From the NCBI GenBank assembly GCA_965112735.1, contig OZ218953.1, positions 3,534,001 through 3,598,000 of the forward strand: a DNA stretch of 64,000 nucleotides, in the 5' to 3' direction. The notes beneath the pieces are model-generated. The model was given only the letters and a program-made list of their open reading frames with translations, had not been told where the DNA came from and ran no database searches. Shown one piece after another: positions 43 to 47,592 of this stretch (its first letter is position 1; every line of letters begins with the position of its first letter). This DNA comes from Phaeosaccion multiseriatum (taxonomy: Eukaryota > Protista > Ochrophyta, other classes). The position numbers and the translations under genes are program-made.

Positions 43-169
43 GCGGTTTCATCGACGACGTGGAGCTGTTCGACAACGCCTTCTTCGGCATCTCCGCGGC
101 CGAGGCGGCGGCTATGGACCCCTCCCAGCGCCTCATGCTCGAGACTTCCTACAAGGTGAGTGAGGGGTA

Positions 170-201
<32 letters not shown>

Positions 202-3200
202 CAAGAGTACATTTTTTTGGACGCAGATTAAAAGTAAGAAGTGGAAAGCCTGTCTGCCTATCTGCCTGTCTGCCTGTCTGCCTGCCTGTCTGCTTGCCTG
301 CCTGTCTGCCTGCCTGAATATCTACCTGCCTGTCTGTCTGCCTGCCTGAATGCCTGCCTGCCTGTCTGTCTGCCTGCCTGTCTGTCTGTCTGTCTGTCTG
401 TCTGTCTCCCTGTCTGCTCGCCTGTCTGGCTGACTGGCTGGTTGGCTCGCCGCCCCTCCTTCCGGCCGGCCTGCCTGCCTGCCTGCATGCTCCTCACCAA
501 GAGAATAAATCTAAACCTCTGTGTGACCTTGAACTTCAAACAAACTTTAAACAGGCCCTGCATGCGGCCGGGTTTCCGGGCCGGCACGCTCTTCGGGGAC
601 AGAAAGTGGGTGTTTTTGTGGGTATGGCGGGTAGCGACTGGGCCGCCCTGGAGCACAAGGTGGCGCACGGCAAGGCAGTGAGCGGCAGCAGTAAGGCAGT
701 GAGCGGCAGCAGTAAGGCAGTGAGCGCCCCTCCCTCGGGCTACTCCGTCGTGGGCAGCTGCCCCGGCTGCGTGGCGGGCCGCGTCTCACAGAGCTTGGGT
801 CTCACGGGCCCAAGTCAGACCCTGTGCGCGGCATGTCCATCCTCGCTGGTGGCGCTGGATGCGGCATGCAACAACCTGGTATTGGGGCGGTGCTCGGCGG
901 CGGTGGTGGGGGGCGTGAACCTGCTGCTGCATCCAGATACCTTCCACTCGCTGGGAAGGGCCGGTCTGCTCTCCAAGCGACGGTAAGTGCGGGAGTCAGT
1001 GAGTGAGTGAGTGAGTCAATGAGTGAGTGAGTGTGTGAGTGTGTGAGTGTGTGAGTGTGTGAGTGAGTGAGTGAGTGAGTGAGTGAGTGAGTGAGTGTGT
1101 GTGTGTGTGAGTGAGTGAGTTAAATAACGAGGGAAAGTCAGTGGGCAGTCGTCCGTATGCCTCGCCTCACTGCATGCCCCTTCCGACCCCTTTCCGACCA
1201 CACACAGCCGCTGCAAGTCGTTCGACGCTTGCGCCGACGGTTACGTGCGGGCCGAGGGCTGCGGCGCTATCGTTGTGAAACGCCTCGACGACGCTGTGGC
1301 GGCGGGGGACAACGTACTCGCGGTCATCAAAGCCACAGCCGTCAGCCACAACGGAGCAAGCGCCTCCCTCGCGGCGCCCAAGGGACAGGCCATGCAGAGT
1401 GCGGCTAGGGACGCACTGGCCCGAGGGGGCTTACATGGTACGGAGGTGAGCTACGTGGAGGCACACGGTACCGGCTCCAAGCTGGGGGACGCCATCGAGA
1501 TGGGTGAGTGTGTGAGGTATAGCAGAGGGGGGAGGATGAGGGAGCAGAGGAGAGGCGGGAGGAGGGAGTAGAGGAGAGGGGTGGGGGTGAGCGGGTTTAG
1601 GAGAGTAGGGGTGGACGACGGAACACAGGATAGGGGTGGATGAGTACGTACAGTACAGCAATGGGGGGTGGGTGGAGGAGTGCACTACAGCAGAGGGGGG
1701 TGGGCGAGTGGGTGGATGAGTGCAGCAGAGAGGGGTAGGTGAGTGCAGCAGTGGGGATGGGTAAGGGACCAGGCAAGGACGACGTGGGGTTGTGGGAGGT
1801 GCAGAAGAGAGGGCGGGCAGCAGTGACAAAGCGACTTGACACCCTGTTCTCTCAAACTCTCACGTCACGCGCCGCATGTGTGCACTTGTGCTCTTGCTTT
1901 TGCTTTTGCTTTGTCTCCTCCTCCTCATGCAGGGGCTCTTAAGGCCGTGTTCGCCCCTTCCGACCGGCCTCTCCGCTCGCCCCTCGTGGTTGGGTCGGTC
2001 AAGAGCTCCCTGGGCCACATGGAGGGTGCCTCGGGTATGGCACAGCTCATCAAGGCCGTGTTGGTGCTCCGGCTCGGGCAAGCGCCGCCCAACCTGCACC
2101 TGTCTAGCCCAAGCGACAAGGTGGCTACCTTACTGAAGGGGGCACCCGTGCTTCTGCCCATGCCCAGCCCCGTATCCTCGGTTGGTAGCAGTGACGGGAG
2201 CGTTGGGAGTGATGACACAGGCAGCAGCGCGGACCTGTCTAGTCTCGGCAAGGGCACGACGACAATGACGGCCTTACGCTCCTTCTGCCGCGACGGGGAG
2301 AGCGTGGTGGCGACTGTCAATTCCTTTGGCGTGGGTGGGGTCAACGCACACGTCGTCCTCAGTAGTCCAGCACCATCCGAGGAGGAGTGGAGGCCCACAG
2401 AGCCTAGTGCAGCAGAAGGCACAGCAGGGGCAGGCACAGAGGAGATGCTCTCGGCGGAAGCGGCGATTACTCTGGCACAGCGGCCCTGGGAGGCCTTCGA
2501 GAGCAGGCGCTCGTTTCCTATCCCATGGGTGCGGGCCGGCGTCACATCGCCCCCGCTGTCGCCGCCGCAGGAGCAGCAGATGCAGCCTCCACCCTCCGCT
2601 CGACGCTGGAGACCTTTCGGGAGGCGAGCGACACAGCAAGTTCAAGGGGGAGAGCAACAAAAAGAGAAAGGCCAAGGCAGGGGCAGAGGCAAAGGCAGAG
2701 GCAGAACGCTTCTTGGCTTGAGCCGTGAGCTGCTCAACAGCGGTACCCCTCCCCCCTCTCCCACTGCCACCCCCGGCACCTTGGCTAGCGGCCCCAGTGT
2801 GGCATCCTCACCGCCGCACTCGGACAAGCAGCGTTTGGTCCTGCAGGCCCTCTCTCCCTTGCAGAGGGAGCAGGCCGTGAGGGCTATCGTCGCAGAGGCG
2901 CTGCAGCACGTGTCCGGAGGAGGCGCCGAGGAGCGCGTCGTCGAGGAGAGCATCACCGACGAGGGGGACATGGAGGAGGGGCGCATCGCCACACAGGTGC
3001 AGCAGCAACACCACCACCACGGGGACGACACGGACGTGAACATTGTGGAGGCGCTCTCGCATGACTCCATGGCCATCGCTGAGCTTGTGGCAAGGGTGGT
3101 GGACAGGGTACAAGGCGAAGGGGCCTGTGCCAGTACCAGTACCACGGCCGTCGCTTACTGCAACTCTGACATGCTGCCCTCCCCCCCCCGATGCGGCGGA

Positions 3201-6200
3201 GGGCTAAGAGAGGTGGTGACGGTGGCGGCGCTGTACGACATGCCCGGGCTTCAAGCCTTCGCCAGCTTTGTCAGCCACGCCTGCAGAGGAGGAGGACTAG
3301 CAGGGGGAGGAGGAGGAGGAGGAGGAGGAGGAGGAGGAGGAGGAGGAGGAGGAAGACTAGCAGGAGGAGCAAGGGGGCACGGAGGTGGAGAAGAAGAAGA
3401 CGGAGAAGCCTGGGCGCGGGCTGAGAAGGGCAGAGATTGGCAGGAGAGCGACTTCTTCCTCCCGCCTGGGCACAAGGCCCGCCCGCACTGCTCGGGGCCT
3501 CGCCTCTTTGTGGCGGCGACTCTGCAGCTCCTTGCGATGTTGTTGGTGCTCTCTCTGGTGCTCGTGCTGCTCGTCAGGGTGCCACTGAGCGTGGCGTGTT
3601 GGGTATCGGGCTACCCACTCCTCAACCTCTTCCAGGTACCGCTGAGGCGCTCGGTTCGTTGTGCGGTGTATTGCGTTATCCTGGCCTCGCCTCGTCCTTT
3701 TCTCTCTCTGTGTTGCTCCCATCGTGGGGTCGGCCTTTCTCACCCGCCTGCCCTCACATCTCCCTCACAAACCTCCCTCCCTCCCTCCCTCCCTCCCTCC
3801 CTCCCTCCCTCCCTCCCTCCCTCCCTCCCCCCCCCCCTCCCCTCTCTCTCTCTGGCCGCCCTTCTCGCCACTCTGCTGCTCCCCGCGCTGCTCTGACTGC
3901 TCCACAGGTGGTGAAGGTGCTTGCGCTGCAAGAGAGCATCACCGCCGACCTCGGCGCCGTGCGGGGAGAGCCCCTCCTAGACAACCCCTATGCTGCACTG
4001 CTGGTGTCGAGTCTCCTTGGAGCCGCCTCCTTCGTGCTTGTTGCGCTCTTCGCCGCGCCGCTCGTCAAGTGGGGGGTGGTGGGGCGCTACAGACCCGGTG
4101 TGTGCGCCGTCTACAGTGTTTTGCACCTGCGCTGGTGAGTGAGTGGGCGTAACACGAGCTGAGAAGTTTGAGTTTGAGCGAGGTGGAAGGGGCGGATTGA
4201 TGGTTCGAGAGGTGGAGCGACTGACTAGCAGCCAACCCAGCTGCTTGCATCTCTTGCCCCCTCCCCTCTTCGTGCTGCTGCTGCTGCTGCTGCTGCTTGC
4301 CCCACTTCCTGCCTGCCTCATTTCCACACCGTCTGACTCGCCTGCTCGTAAAAACCTCGATATGCTCTCCCGCCTCCACGCTCCTCCTCCTCCTGGACTC
4401 ACATCACCTTATCACAGTTGGCTCGTCGAACGGTACCTGGAGACAGTCTTCTACCCCATCGTGCAGATGCTGCTGCCCGACTCCGTGCTGCTCGTGCCCC
4501 TCTACCGCCTCATGGGTGCCTCCATTGGAAGGGGCTGCGACCTCACCGGGGTGCGGCTGAGCGAGTTTGACCTTGTATGCATCGGAGACAATTGCTCCAT
4601 CAGCAGTAGAGCCGTCCTGCAGCCCAAGACCCTCGTTGGTGATATGCAGATGAGCTTCGACGAGGTGAGTGAGTGAGTGAGTGAGTGAGTGAGTGGGTGG
4701 GTGGAGGCATACAGGCATACAAGCATATAGGTATATCGACTGGTGGACAGGTGGCCAGAAGCCGGCCCCCTTTTGCTTTCCCGTTTCGATAGATTCTCAC
4801 ACACTCTCGCATCACCCCCCTCCCCCCCCCCCCCCCCATATACACACGCGCACACGCACACACGCACACGCACACACACACGCACACACCCACACGCACA
4901 CGCACACACGCACACACATATCCGCCCGCCCGAATCCTCTCGCAGGTGAGGATCGGTTCAAATTGCCACCTTGACACCGCTTGCATCGTGCATGGCGGGG
5001 CCGAGCTCGAGGAGGGCGTCATGCTCGCGGTTCGCGCTGCGGTGCCTCCCGGTGCCACGCTGGCCGGCGCACGCACCTACCAAGGCAGCCCTGCGGTGAC
5101 CGTCTCGGGCCCAACCCCCTACTCGCCCTGCCCGACCCGGCCTGCGCTGGACGTTTGGCAGTCTCTGCTGCAGCAGGTGCTCCTCCTCGTTGGATATTTG
5201 GTTTTGTTCGTGCCAGGCTTGCTGCTGGTGACCGCGCTACAGCTGGAGGCGTCCGACCGGGTACACGGAGGCCGCTACGTGGGGCTCGTGCTGCTCCTCC
5301 TCGGGGCTGTGGTGGTGAGCGTGGTGGCCGTGTTGGTGAGCGTGCTCCTCAAATGGCTGCTTGTGGGCAGGCTCAAGACGGGTACCAACACCGCCCGCCA
5401 CATGAGTCGGTTCGGCCGGGCCGCTCGGGAAACTGCCAATCGACTCATCCTGGTGAGCGAGCCCCTCTTGCTGCAGTACTTTCACTTCACGGGCCTCTTG
5501 GCGCTGTACTACCGCATGCTGGGGGCCTCCATTTCGCTCAGCGCCGTGCTCAGCACCGGAGTCGTGCTGTCCGATCCGGACACGCTCTGTATCGGAGACA
5601 ATGCCTTCCTCGGGGGAGGCGCTGCGCTGCTCACAGAGACGAGCGACGGCACCATCGAGGGGTGCGTCGTGGGAGAAGGGACCAACTGCGGAGACCAGAG
5701 CATTGTCGGGGCCGGAGCTCACATTGGCGCACACGCACTCGTCACTTCGCGCTCTTGGGTGGCGGAGGGGACCAAGGTACCCAACAGGGCGACCCTGACG
5801 GGGCTGCCTGGCCGGCCTACGACGAGGGGGTGGAGGAAGGGCGAGAGGAGGACAGAGGAGGGGGAGGGGGGGGGGAGAGGCACCAGCCGTGGCGTACCCA
5901 CGGGATGTGTGACGCTGCAGGCCCTGCTCATCGCCGTGGCCCACCTCGCTCGCGTGTTGCTGTGCGCAATGGCGGCGTGGGAGGGGCTGGAGGCCTTGCA
6001 GCCGCCTATCCACGCCTGGTACCAACAGCACGCCTACCGCCAAGAAGAAGGGGGGGCCAGCCAGAGCCACCATGGCGCCCTTGCCTTCCTTGCCCCTGCT
6101 CAGCGGGCCATTTGGTGCCGTTTCGACTGGCAGACGTTGGCGCTGCCCCTTGCCTATCTGGCCTACCTGCTTCTTGGCTGCTGCACCAATGTGTTGGCCA

Positions 6201-6742
6201 AGTGGCTCGTGGGTAGGCACGAAGAGGGAACGCGGGGGATGGGCAGCTGCTGGGGACTGAGCTATCACCGCTTCGTGGGCTTTGCGGATCTGGGGCGAGG
6301 TTTCCCGGCCTGGATGCTGGGCACCCCCCTGTACCCGTTGTACCTCAGAGTCATGGGAGCTAGGGTGGCCCCGTCCTGCTACACGGAGACGGCCTGGCTC
6401 TTTGATGTGGAGCTCCTCACTGTAGGGGAGGGCAGCATGCTGGCCAGGGACGCCAACCTGTCGCCGCACAACATCCAGATGGGCGAGTGCGAGCTGCTGC
6501 CTGTGAAAGTGGGCCACTCGTGCGTGGTGGGAGTGTTGAGTCGCCTGGTGGGCGGATGCACCCTCAAGCCGGGCGTTGTCGTGGGAGACAATTCTCGACC
6601 CAGCAAGGGACAGATCATCCGCTCCATTGGAGCAGGAGCAGGAGAGGTCTCCGAGTCGGGAGGCCAGCGGAGCAGCGGAGAGTGGCAGTACGCGGGCGTG
6701 CCCATGAAGCCCTGTGTTGCGATGGCCTATGGGGGCTGCTGA
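43..6742 (+). CDS. Type I polyketide synthase, 3' portion (5' end outside window): KS - ACP - Pls/TIGR02353-like membrane terminal domain. Exons 43-155, 555-982, 1208-1503, 1933-3635, 3908-4134, 4418-4664, 4946-6742
   Basis: GT-AG junctions join in frame. KS motifs: [35 protein letters not shown] (catalytic Cys), [53 protein letters not shown]-like HDSMAIAEL (Ser codon 3066-3068). Three repeats of hydrophobic helices + KW..GR + YR.(M/L)GA + hexapeptide LbH ([24 protein letters not shown]). Confidence 0.9.
672..726 (+). repeat. In-frame 21-bp tandem repeat (~2.6 copies, KAVSGSS) inside the KS domain
   Basis: aaggcagtgagcggcagcagt at 672 and 693, partial copy at 714. Confidence 0.9.
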
Positions 6743-7682
6743 GAGGATCTGAGGAGGAGACTCTCCCGAGGACGGGGGGGTTTGGGTTTCGCACGTTAAG
6801 GATATTTGCATGTATGTAGGGAGGGAGGGAGGTGGGAAGTAGGAAGTGTGTGTCGTACCGAAGGGTGTTGTTGGCATTCATTCGTTGTATCATATCTAAA
6901 GGAGTGGAAGAGAGTTGGAACTGGGAAGAAGTGGCCGATCGTTTCGGGCACGGCTTTTTGAAATGGTCGAGGCACCTGTATAGCTAGCATGTAGTCAGGG
7001 TAGTCAGGGTCAGGGTCAGTGTACACGTCAGGACCCGCAGCCCCTTACTCACATGTGGTACTATTTGCATTTGATCTCACATGTTGTGTGAGATACGTCG
7101 GGGGAAGATTGTGAGGGCTCGTGGAACAGCTCGAGGAATCGATTACAGATCAAGGAAGTGAGTTACAAAGTCACTTTGACGTATGGCACCGTGGTAATCG
7201 AGGAAAATATGAGAGCCCACGAACTCAAAAAGCACTGCGTCCCACACTCTTTGGCCATTTTCTTTTATGCCGCGAGCGAATTGGGAATTGGAGTGGTTCA
7301 CAGAAGTAGCGATAGGCGATAGACCGTCTGCTGTGTGTGCTTGGGCGCACGATCCCCCAGGCCCTAGCACGACTCGACACACACATGTAAAACACTTTGC
7401 TATTACAAAAGATTACGTATACTAACGACAAAAGAAGGGATCGCGCGCGCACGCACACAGATCAGAGGCACGGTTAGACTTGATAGGCAAGTCACAAAGA
7501 AAGGGAAGGGGGCTAAGATACGCATTTCTAAACTAATGATAAGTGGGCGAAGGTTACTACCAAAGCAAGCAGCACGCACGCACGCGCGTTGGAGAGCAAC
7601 GGGAAAGTGGGCCACCCGCAAACCCCAATCACACCCAGATGGCACCAAACACCAAAAAAGTGCTCTCTTTGGGCAGTTGGGG

Positions 7683-36833: not shown

Positions 36834-39800
36834 TCATTTCGAGAGGGCTTGTAACCGACTCCTGATTTGGCCGTGCAGGTCGCAGAGGTGCTCCACGTAC
36901 GAGGGGCCGTGGGGCGTCTTGTCCTGGATCAGGCTGCTCACGAAGTCGCTCTGCCGGGCCCGGGGGGTGGGGTGCGGAGGGCGAGCACACAGCAGGGTGG
37001 GGTGGGGTGGGGTGGGTGAGAAACACTCTACGAAAGTAGAACCGGTCTGCCACAACCGAACTGACAAAATCGGGTACAAAATAGACTCAGTCCCGCCACT
37101 CTTTCTCCCCCCCAAAAAGCCGCCCAAAGCCCCGCCGTGCCCCTCGCCTCACCTCCTGCTGAGATCCCGTGTTGAGCACGACAACCTGCACGGCGTGGCA
37201 AACCAGGGTCATCTCGGCCCGCAGCTTGCGGATTAGGGCCCAGCACGACTCCAGCAGTTGGTCGTCCACAGGTCGGGGCTCTGGTCGTGGCTCCAGCTCT
37301 GGCCTCAGGTGGAGGTGTAGCTGGGCCACAGGGTCGTCGGGCAGCGCCGACACGCCGAGCAGGGAGTGCAGCACAGGCGGGGGGCATGCCTTGCCCACAA
37401 AGAGGAAGAGACCCACGGCTGGGCTGTCCAGCAGGAACACCCCGCCCACAGAGAGCTTCTCCGACGAGCAGGGCAGCGGCTGGGGTGACGAAGACACCCC
37501 TGCTGCGACAGTGGTCACTACCGACGAGGGCGAGGTGGTGGTGGTGGTGGTGGTGGTGATGGCGAAGAGGCGAGGGTGCAGCGTCTTGATGACGTCCACC
37601 GTGCGCATCTTCTTGAGCAGGTGCAGCTGCAGCCCGCGCTGGTCGGCAACAGGGTCGCAGGGCAGCCAGTTCTTGGCGTTACGTCGGTTCTCCCGCAGGC
37701 CCACTGTCAGCCCACGGGGGAAGTAGGCAGGTAGGCAGGTAGGTAGGTAGGTAGGTAGGTAGGTAGGTAGGTAGGTCGGTAAGTAGGTAGGTAGGTAGGT
37801 AGGAAGGAAGGAAGGAAGGGAGGGAGGTAGGTAGGTAGGTAGGTAAGTAGGTAGGTAGGTAGGTAGGTAGGTAAGTAGGTAGGTAGGTAGGTAGGTAGGT
37901 AGGAAGGAAGGGAGGGAGGTAGGTAGGTAGGTAGGTAGGTTGGTTGGTAGGTTGGTAGGTAGGGAGGCAGGTAAGTAAGTAGGCAGGAAGAAGGAGGTAG
38001 GTAGGTAGGCAGGTAGGTGAGTGGGTGGGTGAGAGCGCGGTAAGAGGTGCGGCGGAAACCAGAGGAGGAGGGTAGGTCAGTCAGTCTGTGAGTGATCTCT
38101 CTGTCTGCCTTGCCTCTCTGCAGGCATGCCCTCCGTGAGGGCCCACCCACCCATCCACCCACCCAAAAACCTACCCCCCCACGCACCCCCGCACTCATCC
38201 ACCCAGCCACCCACCCACGCACCGTGCTTCCGGAGCGCCAAGGAGAAGAGCGGCAGCGTCCGCATGGACTCTGGCAAAATGAGCTGCCCCGGGGGGAAGT
38301 TTGTCGCGCAGTGGAGCCGATACGCCAGCAGCATGTCCAGCACAGCCCGCTCCATGCTCGCCTGCACCTGCGCTACAAGCGTTCCCAGGATTTGCTCCTC
38401 GGACTTGTTCCTCCCGTCTACACCTCCCAGCCAAGAGGAGGAGGAGGAGGACGAGGAGGAGGAGGCAGAAGATAACCAGGAGGAGACGGAGGGCGTCGAG
38501 CACGGCGGAGAGAGGCTCAGGGCGGCCTGCCGGGCCAGGAAGGTGGTGACGCACTCCACATCGGCGGCCTGGAACACACTGGCCGGGTCGGAGGACAACA
38601 CCAGCGCCAGCGAGTGGCATCGCACGCGTCTTTGCCCCTCAGGACATGTGTACACGAGTGCGGCCTGCACGTACACCAGGTTACCAACGCTGTCGCCCTT
38701 GCCCGCCTTGGCGCTTCCTCCTCCTCCTCCGCCGCCGCCGCCGCCTATTTTCATGGCCCCCATGAGGCCCCCCGGGGAGTGCTCGAGCTGCACCAGCACA
38801 CTCGTCTCTCTCGTGAGCACGGGCACTTCCAGCTCCCCGTCCACAGCCTCGCTGCCCACACCCGACAAATAGGGGCTCACCACTTCGAAGCCCGAGCTGC
38901 AGCGCACCTTCAGGATCGCGTCGAGCGCCACTGTGCCGCCTGTCTCACTACTGCCTCCTCTCGTCGGCAGCCCAGCTCTCCCTTGCCCCCCATTGCTCCT
39001 CGCTCCTCCTTCGCCATTGCCCTGACCACTGCCCAGTGCCAAGGCAGCGACGAGGCGGGCAGCGATGGCCTCCTTCTGCTGCCTCGGCGCCACGTCCTCG
39101 CGGACAAGCTCCTGATGGCCGTATTGGCCGGCGGGGGCTGCAAGAATTTGAGTCGATAGGCCCTCCAGCAGAGTGATGTGACCGCCCGTCACGTCGGCAA
39201 GCTGAGGCAGCAGGCAAGACGGAGAAGAGGAGCCAGGGGCGAGACAAAATGAGGTGTTAGGGGGGGGGGGCGGATTCTTGCGGCACAAACGCTGCATGTA
39301 CTGACACGACTGTTGACGAACAAAACGTCCTTCGCCCCTTCTTCTTCCCCCATCACACTTGGCGACCACGCGCAGGGTGCGTGTACTCTTTCCCTCCCGT
39401 CCCCCCCCCCCTGCCCGCCCATCTGCATCGTCCACCCATCCGCCAGCTCCAGGACCAGACACACACACGCACCTGAGCGAGGGCGGGTATGTCCCAGCAC
39501 GCCCCTCCCCCGATGCCCAGCCCCACACCCTTGCTTGACGCCCCTCGGCCGTCGCTCTCCCCTGCGTCGCGGCTCAGCAGCAGCAGCAGCTCTATGCTAA
39601 TCTGCAGCCGGTACAACACGAAAAGACGGGTTGGGAGGTTACTTTCAGAGGTTACTTTCAGTCCTGTGCCCCTGGCGGTAGGTACAGAGGAGGGGGGGGG
39701 GAGGGGCTCTGGAGCAGTTCTGCTCGAAGCAGCAGCAGCAGCAGCAGGAAGATGAACGCAAGATAGACATTGGAGTCGGACAGGAGATGGCTTGCGTCAC

Positions 39801-45197: not shown

Positions 45198-47592
45198 GGT
45201 GGCATGAGTATGAGCATGAGCAGCGGAGACAGCTACCTAGATGTGTACCTGGATGTGTACGGCACCCCTGCCCCTTCCGCCTCGAGCGCTGACGGCATGC
45301 CGGGGGAGGGGGGCGAGTTGAGCCCCTCCGCACAGAACCTGATGGCTCTGGTGCTGCTGCTGTTGATATCCCCCTTCTGCCTCTTGTCCTCCCTGGACAA
45401 GCTCAAGGCGGCGTCGCTGGGTTGCGTCGCTTCCATCATGCTCCTCGCCGCAGCCGTCCTCACAAGGTGAGAGAGAGGTGGGGCAGAGGGACACTCTCTC
45501 GTTGAGGATTGAGGGGCGTGGGTGCGTGCGTGGGTGCGTGCGTGCGTGCGTCTATCCCCCCATCAAAAGCCAACATCTGAACCCCACGCCCGAACCCTTC
45601 CTGACACCCCTGTGACCCTTCCTGACCCTTCCTGGCTCCCGTCCTGACACCATCCTGACCTCCGTCCTCACCCCTCTGTACCTCCCATCCAGAGCGGTGG
45701 GGACCTGCCGGAACGCGACGGACGTGCCGTGGGGACATGCGCTGAGCGGCCCGCGGGAGGGCTGGATGGGAGCGCTGCAGGGCCTTCCCATCTTCGTGTG
45801 TGCCTTCGTGTGCCACTTCAATGTCTTGGTGAGCTCATGTACTGTCCAACTTGACTTCTCCCTCCCTTAGTCCATTCCGTACCCCCCCCCCCCTCACCCC
45901 TCACCCCCTTACCTCTCCACCCTCTCTCTCTCTCTCTCTGTCTCGGCGGTGACGCCAATGCTGGCTTTTACTCTCCGCATCAAGTCTGTCCCTCTCTTCT
46001 TCCGCCCCACCCCTCACCCCCAACCCACTCTCTCTCTCAACCCGCGCACCCCCCCCCCCCACCTCCTCCCCCTTACCCGCCAGCCCCTGCACGGCGAGCT
46101 GCACCGGCCTTCGCGTCGCCGCCTGCACCGCCTCGTGCACTGGACCATGTTCAATGTAGCGATCTTCTACCTCGGGGTGGGCGTGTCGGGCTACTTCTAC
46201 GGCCTGTGCGTGGGACATCTCACGGACAACATTCTCAACGACTTTGACCCCGACGATGTGCTTGTCAACGTGGGGCGGTTGGGGCTGGTGTTGACCATCT
46301 TGCTGGGCTTTCCCCTCATGGTGGTGCCGTGCAGAGAGACCATGCTAGGCCTCTGGGCAGAGCTACGCAAGGGCAAGGGAGAGGGAGAAGGGGAGGAGGA
46401 AGGGGAGGGGAAGCAGGTAGCAGTAGAAGAGCCGCTTCTTCCTTCGCCTTCGCCTTCGCCTTCCCTCTGTGGGGCATGCGCTGCGGTTGCGCTGGCGGCG
46501 GGTGGGGACAACGGGGGAGGCCTCGCGAGGGCCAGTCTGGTGTCCTCTGAGCTCGAAGCGGGAGAGCAGGACGGAGGAGGGGGTGGCAGTGGGATTGGGG
46601 AGGTGTTCGTGTTGGCGGGAACCGAGGGGGGTGGACGGCACCCAATGCCGGAGGAGGAGGAGGAGGAGGAGGACGGGCATGTGTGTCAGCAGTGCGGCGT
46701 GTCCATTGCCGTCATGGCTGGAGAGGGGGTGGAATATGTGGCAGCGAGGGAGGAAAGCGGCCCTTTGGTGGCAGCGTCGCTGCGTAAGAGCGGGGGCGGT
46801 GGCGATGGTGGTGGTGGTGGCAGGGCATGGGGCGGCAGGAGGTGGTTGGGATGGAGGAGGGGGAGGGGCGGCGCGGTAGAGAAGCGTGGCATGGGTGCTC
46901 GGCAAGAAGGAGACGGCCTCAAGGAGCCCTTGCTGGGCAGGGGAGACGATATCGAGAGGGAGGGGGGGCAGGAGCTTGAGGAGAGAAGAGCTCCCGTGGG
47001 CTGGGGAGAGGAGGGAAAAGACGGCTTGAGGGAGGATGCAAGTGACTCCTTGAGCGACAGTACCGACAGCAGCATGAGCCGCGGGGCGAGTTTCCCCCGT
47101 GAGGCGAAGGACAGGACCTTGGGCTCGTTGCTCGCGCCCGACATACTCATGGAGAGGGGCGAGGGCAGCGACGGGGGCGGCGATGGCTATGGGGATGGCA
47201 GTGGACGTGTCATTGCCTTCTCTGGGCAGGGGATGAAGGGGAAGGGGGAGGAGGAGCAGCAAGAAACAGCAGCACCCCCCCCGTCTCCCCCCTCCTCCAT
47301 GCTCGTCCATGTGGCCTTGACCTATGCAATCCTGCTGACGGTGGTGGGCCTGGCCTCTGTGCTGACGAGGGTCACGGACGTGTGGGGGCTGCTGGGGAGC
47401 AGCTTCAACACGCTCGTGGCCTTTGTCATTCCGTGCGCTTGCTACCTCAAGATTCGCAAGTACCACCGCCCGAGGAAGGGCAAGCGCTTCCACTATGTGC
47501 GCAAGCGGATGGCGAGGATCCTATTGTGGAGCTCGACCGTGCTGGGCATTGTATGCTTCGCCAATCAGCTCTATGTAATGGCCAGCAGGTAG
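44271..47592 (+). CDS. Amino acid transporter, AAAP/SLC38 (AVT6-like), multi-exon
   Basis: SAVTNLVSTIIGGGVLSLPFA, SFGDVAEVAFGR, LSSLDKLKAAS, LPIFVCAFVCHFNVLPLHGEL, GYFYG..DNILNDF, FPLMVVPCRE, VWGLLGS..AFVIPCACYLKI. Confidence 0.92.

Follow-up and report, generated by a model that had tools for sequence, protein, structure and literature searches.

The membrane-bound C-terminal tail of Pls and PosA is needed for the polymerisation of carrier-bound diamino acids (PMC8506220, PMC10522769). AlphaFold and RoseTTAFold models of PosA contain six bent membrane helices and three five-turn beta-helices in approximate three-fold packing, an arrangement which resembles the sugar-nucleotide acyltransferases; neither structure nor mechanism of the Pls tail has been solved (PMC10522769). 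Tails of this type are characterised so far only in bacterial and fungal makers of polylysine-like polymers, and databases treat the tail as exclusive to single-module polymerases resembling nonribosomal peptide synthetases. Here, a gene of the ochrophyte alga Phaeosaccion multiseriatum is described in which a Pls-type tail follows the ketosynthase (KS) and a putative acyl carrier protein (ACP) domain of a polyketide synthase (PKS). It lies at the start of a 64,000-nucleotide stretch of contig OZ218953.1 (assembly GCA_965112735.1, positions 3,534,001 to 3,598,000 of the forward strand), which is referred to as the window and to which all positions below refer. The architecture, with a KS, a carrier and a Pls/PosA-type C-terminus where a thioesterase (TE) or reductase (R) domain would be expected, had been proposed in a sequence-only reading of this DNA and was confirmed by profile and alignment evidence. 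We propose, with moderate confidence, that the tail is a membrane-bound pseudo-trimeric acyltransferase, which replaces the TE or reductase and frees the chain from the ACP by transfer to an acceptor with an amine or hydroxyl group, His1512 being the likely base. As that reading had supposed, no characterised enzyme with this layout was found in the literature searched (TIGR02353, Pls together with PKS or ketosynthase, Pls cryo-EM and algal NAPAA), and no KS- or PKS-to-Pls-tail enzyme was described there. The layout is uncharacterised, yet it already occurs in public protist data.

A ketosynthase, a carrier and a Pls-type tail in one gene

Seven forward-strand exons, separated by introns that all have GT-AG borders, were joined from position 43 to 6742 into a single frame with zero internal stops. 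The spliced product has 1602 amino acids and ends at a TGA stop (6740-6742). The window begins within an intron and the first exon opens at about position 60 of the KS profile, so that the gene extends upstream; its 5′ end is beyond the window edge, and what is seen is the 3′ two-thirds of a predicted nuclear gene from a GC-rich alga. The GC content of the region is 61-68% and falls past 6742. Exon 4 is uninterrupted and encodes the KS C-terminus, the carrier domain and the first transmembrane helix (TM1). With all three in one stop-free exon, the KS-ACP part is joined to the start of the tail without any splicing, and KS, carrier and Pls-type tail are one gene, as first read. The three junctions inside the tail (3635/3908, 4134/4418 and 4664/4946) were reproduced from the GT-AG borders and the frame. 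Two of them, 4134/4418 and 4664/4946, cut the conserved PlsC motifs R-x-W and I-x-I-G-x-x-C, and the spacing of these motifs is correct only with the proposed splicing, which supports both junctions.

An annotation artefact, by which two adjacent genes (one for KS-ACP, the other for a Pls-like membrane protein) or a pseudogene would have been read as one, was considered. The gene was read from genomic DNA alone, and long frames are commoner at 64% GC, as exemplified by an antisense frame of 546 amino acids. Such an error is nevertheless very improbable, as the sequence from KS to TM1 is stop-free within one exon, seven exons with canonical borders show no frameshift, and homologues from other protists have both parts in a single transcript open reading frame (ORF). 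The antisense ORF mentioned (5237-6877, minus strand) runs across the tail-coding exon and is probably a by-product of the high GC content.

The N-terminal 60 or so profile positions of the KS are cut off at the window edge. PF00109 and PF02801 matched four successive exon pieces (E 2e-10 to 1.5e-24), and the same pieces were matched by NCBIfam type I PKS models, NF040607 (Pks13) among them. When the KS was aligned with five homologous KS domains, no gaps appeared at the exon joins, and Cys131, His266, Lys302 and His307 fell on the catalytic columns, which bears out the earlier statement that the Cys-His-His triad is intact. The Cys131 motif, CAACPSS, is unusual, and the KS carries two insertions relative to its homologues. 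In the window part of the gene, PF00698 gave no match for a cis acyltransferase (AT), and only a KS-AT linker fragment follows the KS; the lack of a cis AT is compatible with trans-AT loading. Neither a ketoreductase (KR) nor, in the profile scan of the exon pieces, a TE, R or condensation (C) domain was found in the same part of the gene. No AMP-binding match was obtained on any exon piece in the window; the KS stands before the carrier instead.

The region behind the KS was compared with a custom hidden Markov model (HMM) made from 160 carrier domains of Pls-tail-bearing matches. The score of 11.8 bits (E 1e-5, as a single test) was reached by none of 2000 shuffled sequences, the best of which had 5.2 bits; scores near zero were obtained for the KS and for the sequence in reverse. 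The match consists of three collinear pieces, corresponding to helix I, the Ser-bearing helix II, and helices III-IV. MAFFT placed Ser657 on the invariant Ser and Tyr713 on a nearly invariant Tyr, in agreement with the phosphopantetheine site formerly suggested at 3066. In an AlphaFold2 (AF2) model of the carrier, the four core helices have pLDDT of about 90, helix II begins with the Ser, and two inserts are disordered. The best six Foldseek matches of this model were all PKS ACP domains, with weak E-values. On these grounds the region is accepted as a putative divergent ACP. Between the ACP and TM1, an in-frame (GAG/GGA)28 run at 3286-3369 encodes a stretch of 17 Gly.

Properties of the membrane tail

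The tail of about 810 residues consists of three tandem units, each predicted to have two membrane helices and a left-handed beta-helix (LbH), and the units were found close to the coordinates first claimed for them (Table 1). Hydropathy and unit alignment show three pairs of hydrophobic helices; after every pair come KW..GR, YR.(M/L)GA and hexapeptide repeats. The units are mutually similar (blastp E 2.5e-10, 7.5e-9 and 2e-3). That the C-terminus is of Pls type, as had been recognised, is apparent from the matches of TIGR02353 (Pls/PosA) to exon 7 (E 3.4e-37), exon 6 (E 7.7e-6) and exon 5 (E 8.5e-3). The best TIGR02353 score was 128 bits against a curated cut-off of 423.1 bits, scored on separate exon pieces. 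An HMM from 76 Pls-tail domains, which is not the curated model, gave 362 bits (E 3e-112) on the spliced protein. PF00132 (Hexapep) matched within unit 3 (ORF residues 520-550, E 9e-8).

The AF2 model of exon 7 (pTM 0.83; pLDDT 82, and above 90 across most of unit 2) has long helices alternating with the short regular strands typical of LbH. Its Foldseek matches were trimeric LbH proteins, namely serine and maltose O-acetyltransferases, with E 3e-5 for the LbH acetyltransferases, and gamma-carbonic anhydrases. All three helix pairs have positive residues next to their cytosolic ends. This charge distribution, on the topology given by hydropathy, suggests that the ACP and all LbH domains lie on the same side of the membrane, which is consistent with a direct hand-over of the chain.

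Of 43 family positions conserved at 88% or more, the tail keeps 29, including the invariant His1512. The His is found in unit 3 only, the equivalent residue being Lys in unit 1 and Glu in unit 2, and the motif around it reads SPHNIQMG compared to the family consensus QTHLFEDR. With profiles of the C1, C2 and C3 units, the score differences between units exceed 100 bits in bona fide members, whereas the units of the window are barely told apart. By its sequence the tail is a divergent branch and no typical Pls member. Assignment of the three units to C1, C2 and C3 was ambiguous, TIGR02353 and the custom HMM aligning them in different registers. An equivalence of the His with one in a gamma-carbonic-anhydrase-like PDB chain was also considered; the alignment was one residue off, and nothing was drawn from it.

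Relatives in protists and metagenomes

An exhaustive search of 1.84 billion protein representatives returned 1074 matches, none with more than 32% identity. Exact look-ups of the exon-7 ORF product, begun at its first codon (GTG) and at its first ATG, gave no entry either, which suggests that the proteins of this genome are absent from the collections. Most are adenylation-thiolation-tail (A-T-tail) proteins of about 1300 amino acids, called Pls/PosA where named. Uncharacterised algal homologues of the fusion had been anticipated, and the fusion is indeed not unique; the uncharacterised PKS-to-Pls-tail proteins were, however, found in Telonema, Stygiella, diplonemids and metagenomes and not only in algae. 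In Telonema subtile (EP00656_P038690/1), a Trinity transcript ORF has the order KS-ACP-tail. The protein of Stygiella incarcerata (EP01028_P005930) reads KS-AT-KR-ACP-KS-DH-ER-KR-ACP-tail, with dehydratase (DH) and enoylreductase (ER) domains, and those of Artemidia motanka (EP01065_P042179, P0084) and Diplonema papillatum (KAJ9444505.1, named 'EryA1', P0185) read A-KR-ACP-KS-AT-KR-ACP-tail. The diplonemid order was also seen at L004:1-13777 of a 2.9-Mb contig (ENA ERZ25333217), divided over four consecutive called products (A-KR-ACP, KS, AT-KR and ACPx3-Pls tail) and with the eukaryotic neighbours CAF1C, a CDC20-like WD40 protein and CFA20. A further metagenomic locus, L003:3-6075 (ENA ERZ19395924), holds P0055 in the order KS - DH - AMP-binding - T - Pls tail; this locus looks like one intron-split eukaryotic gene, divided by the gene caller into three products. 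Also among the PKS-to-Pls-tail relatives are the metagenome contig L002, P0184, in which the PKS-linked tail is part of an uninterrupted 11.7-kb metagenomic ORF, and P0023 (KR-ACPx3-tail).

The survey of PosA was restricted to sequences of 1100-1800 amino acids (PMC10522769), a limit outside which most of the long PKS-linked forms would fall. Other attachments to Pls tails were noticed as well: a C-terminal family-2 glycosyltransferase in P0052, amine-oxidase and catalase-type domains in P0183 of the liverwort Marchantia paleacea, and a C-terminal phosphopantetheinyl transferase (PPTase) in P0018.

A FastTree tree of 170 rows had many long branches, and only an IQ-TREE tree of 40 rows was used, with caution. 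In the latter, the window tail is placed in a four-member clade of its own with P0055, P0001 and P0035 (SH-aLRT 99), separate from the named protist PKS-linked tails. It groups with PKS-linked metagenomic relatives, some of them eukaryotic-looking, outside the bacterial Pls clade. The PKS-linked tails are spread over two or more distinct clades, none of which belongs to the actinobacterial Pls group, and the branches are long.

Proposed release of the chain by the tail

The proposed release by acyl transfer may be depicted as follows: The KS would condense an acyl primer with malonyl-ACP loaded by a trans-acting AT, giving a beta-ketoacyl thioester on Ser657. The ACP and the three LbH domains would face the same side of the membrane, and the LbH domains would pack as a pseudo-trimer, like the acyltransferases that use sugar nucleotides and acyl-ACP and as modelled for PosA (PMC10522769). 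The tail would accept the acyl-S-phosphopantetheine donor and pass the chain to an acceptor on or within the membrane, which would take it up through an amine or hydroxyl group; His1512 of the third LbH would be the likely general base. A His general base is usual in the LbH acyltransferase superfamily. A lipid, sugar, amine or polymer with an N- or O-linked acyl chain would result and might be exported through the helix bundle.

Several observations weigh against this scheme. For the carrier, Pfam PP-binding had no match on the ACP region even at E 10, so that of the profiles named in the sequence-only reading TIGR02353, PF00109 and PF02801 were matched and the carrier profile was not; hhalign against eight carrier domains gave the correct register with a probability of 1.4%, which is not significant, and the AF2 carrier model was built from the carrier-domain alignment and is hence not independent of it. 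No AT was found, either in the gene part (PF00698) or as a trans-AT in the window. Junction 3635/3908 falls in a variable, non-conserved loop and has GT-AG borders and frame as its only basis; in this model from genomic sequence, retention of intron 3636-3907 would lead to a stop at 3896. A sequence search of the PDB retrieved only gamma-carbonic anhydrases and hexapeptide transferases and no structure of a Pls tail, and it is from its invariance only that His1512 is likely to be catalytic. Finally, 14 of the 43 strongly conserved family positions differ in the window tail and unit 3 scores better with the C1 profile (107 bits) than with the C3 profile (80 bits), for which reasons the activity of the tail is not assured.

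The divergence of the tail would also be expected if it were catalytically dead and only anchored or scaffolded KS-ACP at the membrane, release being left to another enzyme or to hydrolysis. The 14 changed positions include most of the QTHLFEDR motif around the His, and the best exon piece has 128 bits with TIGR02353, far below the cut-off of 423. A dead tail is still quite improbable, since the invariant His is retained and all three units still have K-W..G..R-x-W, R..G..G and the glycine pattern. The variant motifs (SPH/TPH, VGH.C) recur in the closest relatives, a sign of a conserved subfamily and not of decay, and about 810 intact codons with three correctly placed introns argue for selection.

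The sequence-only reading had seen in the gene a membrane-embedded polyketide polymerase or exporter. As an iterative Pls-like polymerase, the tail would join ACP-bound polyketide monomers into a polyester or polyamide to be extruded, for instance as a biopolymer of the wall. In favour of this, the tail shares homology with domains which polymerise carrier-bound monomers (PMC8506220, PMC10522769), and the A-KR and KS-AT-KR modules of the Artemidia, Diplonema and L004 relatives would supply ester-capable hydroxy-acyl monomers. The visible module of the algal protein, however, is KS-ACP without a KR, and the beta-ketoacyl chain would have no nucleophile; the acceptor amine or hydroxyl that polymerisation in the Pls manner needs would be missing, and the earlier proposal is speculative. 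Furthermore, the Stygiella relative is fully reducing (DH-ER-KR) and its saturated chain would be unable to polymerise, the window units are poorly differentiated into C1, C2 and C3, and no polymer-related genes were nearby among the window ORFs scanned. A polymerase is therefore considered unlikely here. Given that no KR is in view, a single acyl-transfer release fits the domain content better, and one transfer per chain is more likely than polymerisation. The beta-ketoacyl chain expected from the window protein and the saturated chain expected from the Stygiella protein together suggest that, where it follows PKS modules, the tail releases the chain as an acyltransferase, onto a separate acceptor with an amine or hydroxyl group.

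Polymerisation is possible where KR domains yield hydroxy-acyl monomers, and in the alga it would need a trans-KR. Taken further, the PKS-to-Pls-tail enzymes might be a hitherto undescribed class, mostly from protists, that polymerises polyketide or fatty-acyl units while embedded in the membrane. Here, with a trans-KR, hydroxy-acyl units would be linked to give an aliphatic polyester that is extruded, and resistant wall polymers of algae, similar to algaenan or cutin, might be made in this way; we regard this extension as distinctly doubtful.

The final shape of a polyketide is set by chain release, and to our knowledge the known polyketide release domains, namely thioesterases, reductases and condensation-like domains, are all soluble. 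If release by acyl transfer is true, a PKS that ends in a pseudo-trimeric beta-helix acyltransferase embedded in the membrane would add another mode of chain release, by which polyketide or fatty-acyl assembly is tied directly to a membrane acceptor or to export. Pls tails behind PKS modules occur in no fewer than four eukaryotic lineages that are only distantly related, namely a stramenopile alga, Telonemia, Jakobida and Diplonemea. This recurrence probably means a wider donor range for the tail, and it points to protist lipids or polymers of a class not yet known. The gene of the alga is a minimal KS-ACP-tail version and is suited to expression and mutagenesis.

Genomic surroundings

Ten large ORFs elsewhere in the 64-kb window were scanned. 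Only Sec23/24 and an amino-acid transporter were recognised among them; no match to an AT, a KR or a PPTase was obtained, and the PKS is not surrounded by a biosynthetic cluster within the window. Four of the six introns of the PKS gene consist mostly of microsatellite with units of 4-8 bp, different in each: (GCCT/GTCT)n, (GAGT)n, (CCTC)n, and (GTGA)n with (CACACG)n. Coordinates are listed in Table 1.

Table 1. Features of the PKS gene and its surroundings, in window positions.
Feature	Position	Strand	Basis or remark
Exons 1-7	43-155, 555-982, 1208-1503, 1933-3635, 3908-4134, 4418-4664, 4946-6742	+	GT..AG borders and frame
Intron microsatellites	170-490, 993-1120, 3772-3841, 4665-4703, 4842-4918		Several begin directly at the GTGAGT donor
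KS domain, residues 1-425 (exons 1-4)	43..2372	+	PF00109/PF02801, NCBIfam type I PKS models; alignment with homologues
KS catalytic residues	Cys131 834-836, His266 1464-1466, Lys302 2001-2003, His307 2016-2018	+	Alignment with five homologous KS domains
21-bp perfect tandem repeat, 2.6 copies, encoding KAVSGSS units	672..726	+	TRF; insertion in KS surface loop
KS-to-carrier linker, low complexity	2373..2849	+	Weak partial KAsynt_C_assoc match, E 1e-5
Divergent carrier (ACP/T) domain, putative, two long inserts	2850..3302	+	Custom HMM, MAFFT, AF2
Putative phosphopantetheine Ser657, motif LSHDSM	3066-3068	+	Alignment on invariant Ser
Unit 1, residues 795-1068	3480..5137	+	Hydropathy; F1 unit HMM 144 bits; TIGR02353 on exons 5 and 6
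Unit 1 features	TM1 3507-3581, TM2 3992-4066, KW..GR from 4067, YRLMGA, LbH 1		Introns 3636-3907, 4135-4417 and 4665-4945 inside
Unit 2, residues 1069-1312	5138..5869	+	TM3 5165-5233, TM4 5279-5353, KW..GR, YRMLGA, LbH 2
Unit 3, residues 1313-1602	5870..6739	+	TM5 5906-5974, TM6 6134-6199, KW.VGR, LRVMGA, LbH 3
Family-invariant His1512 in LbH 3	6467-6469	+	Invariant in 77- and 76-sequence alignments
Sec23/24-family exons	38077-39528	-	Housekeeping
Aa_trans amino-acid transporter exon	45949-47592	+	Housekeeping

Relation to described enzymes

Like Pls of Streptomyces albulus, PosA of Acinetobacter baumannii and the fungal Pls, the algal protein has its carrier directly before a C-terminus of six helices and three LbH domains (PMC8506220, PMC10522769). 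It also shares with Pls/PosA the lack of a C or TE domain, the invariant His of the third unit and a significant sequence homology. It differs in that a KS, and not an amino-acid adenylation domain, feeds the carrier, so the donor would be an acyl or polyketide chain and not a diamino acid. The tail is also longer (about 810 amino acids compared to about 700 in Pls/PosA), is 20-32% identical to theirs and has weakly differentiated units. An isopeptide-linked homopolymer of diamino acids is an unlikely product because the KS replaces the amino-acid A domain.

The proteins of Telonema, Stygiella, Artemidia and Diplonema and of contigs L002, L003 and L004 are type I PKS that likewise end in a Pls tail and not in a TE or R domain, and the order of the Telonema protein is identical to that of the window. 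The window tail is only 22-26% identical to the protist PKS-linked tails, and most of those proteins have AT and reducing domains, which are missing from the window part of the algal gene.

Mycobacterial Pks13 is a FAAL-primed, minimally reducing KS-ACP enzyme whose terminal domain moves the beta-ketoacyl product to a trehalose hydroxyl at the membrane. That domain is a soluble alpha/beta-hydrolase TE, and Pks13 has a cis-AT and no LbH or membrane domain. The outcome proposed for the algal protein, release by transfer and without hydrolysis, is similar, while the similarity of the KS domains is generic for type I PKS.

With LpxA, LpxD and the serine and maltose O-acetyltransferases, the tail shares the LbH fold found by Foldseek, a phosphopantetheine thioester as the presumed donor and, by analogy with the PosA model, helices in threes (PMC10522769). 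Enzymes of the LpxA type are soluble homotrimers with three active sites, whereas the window protein has three non-identical LbH domains in one chain, interleaved with membrane helices, and a single invariant His.

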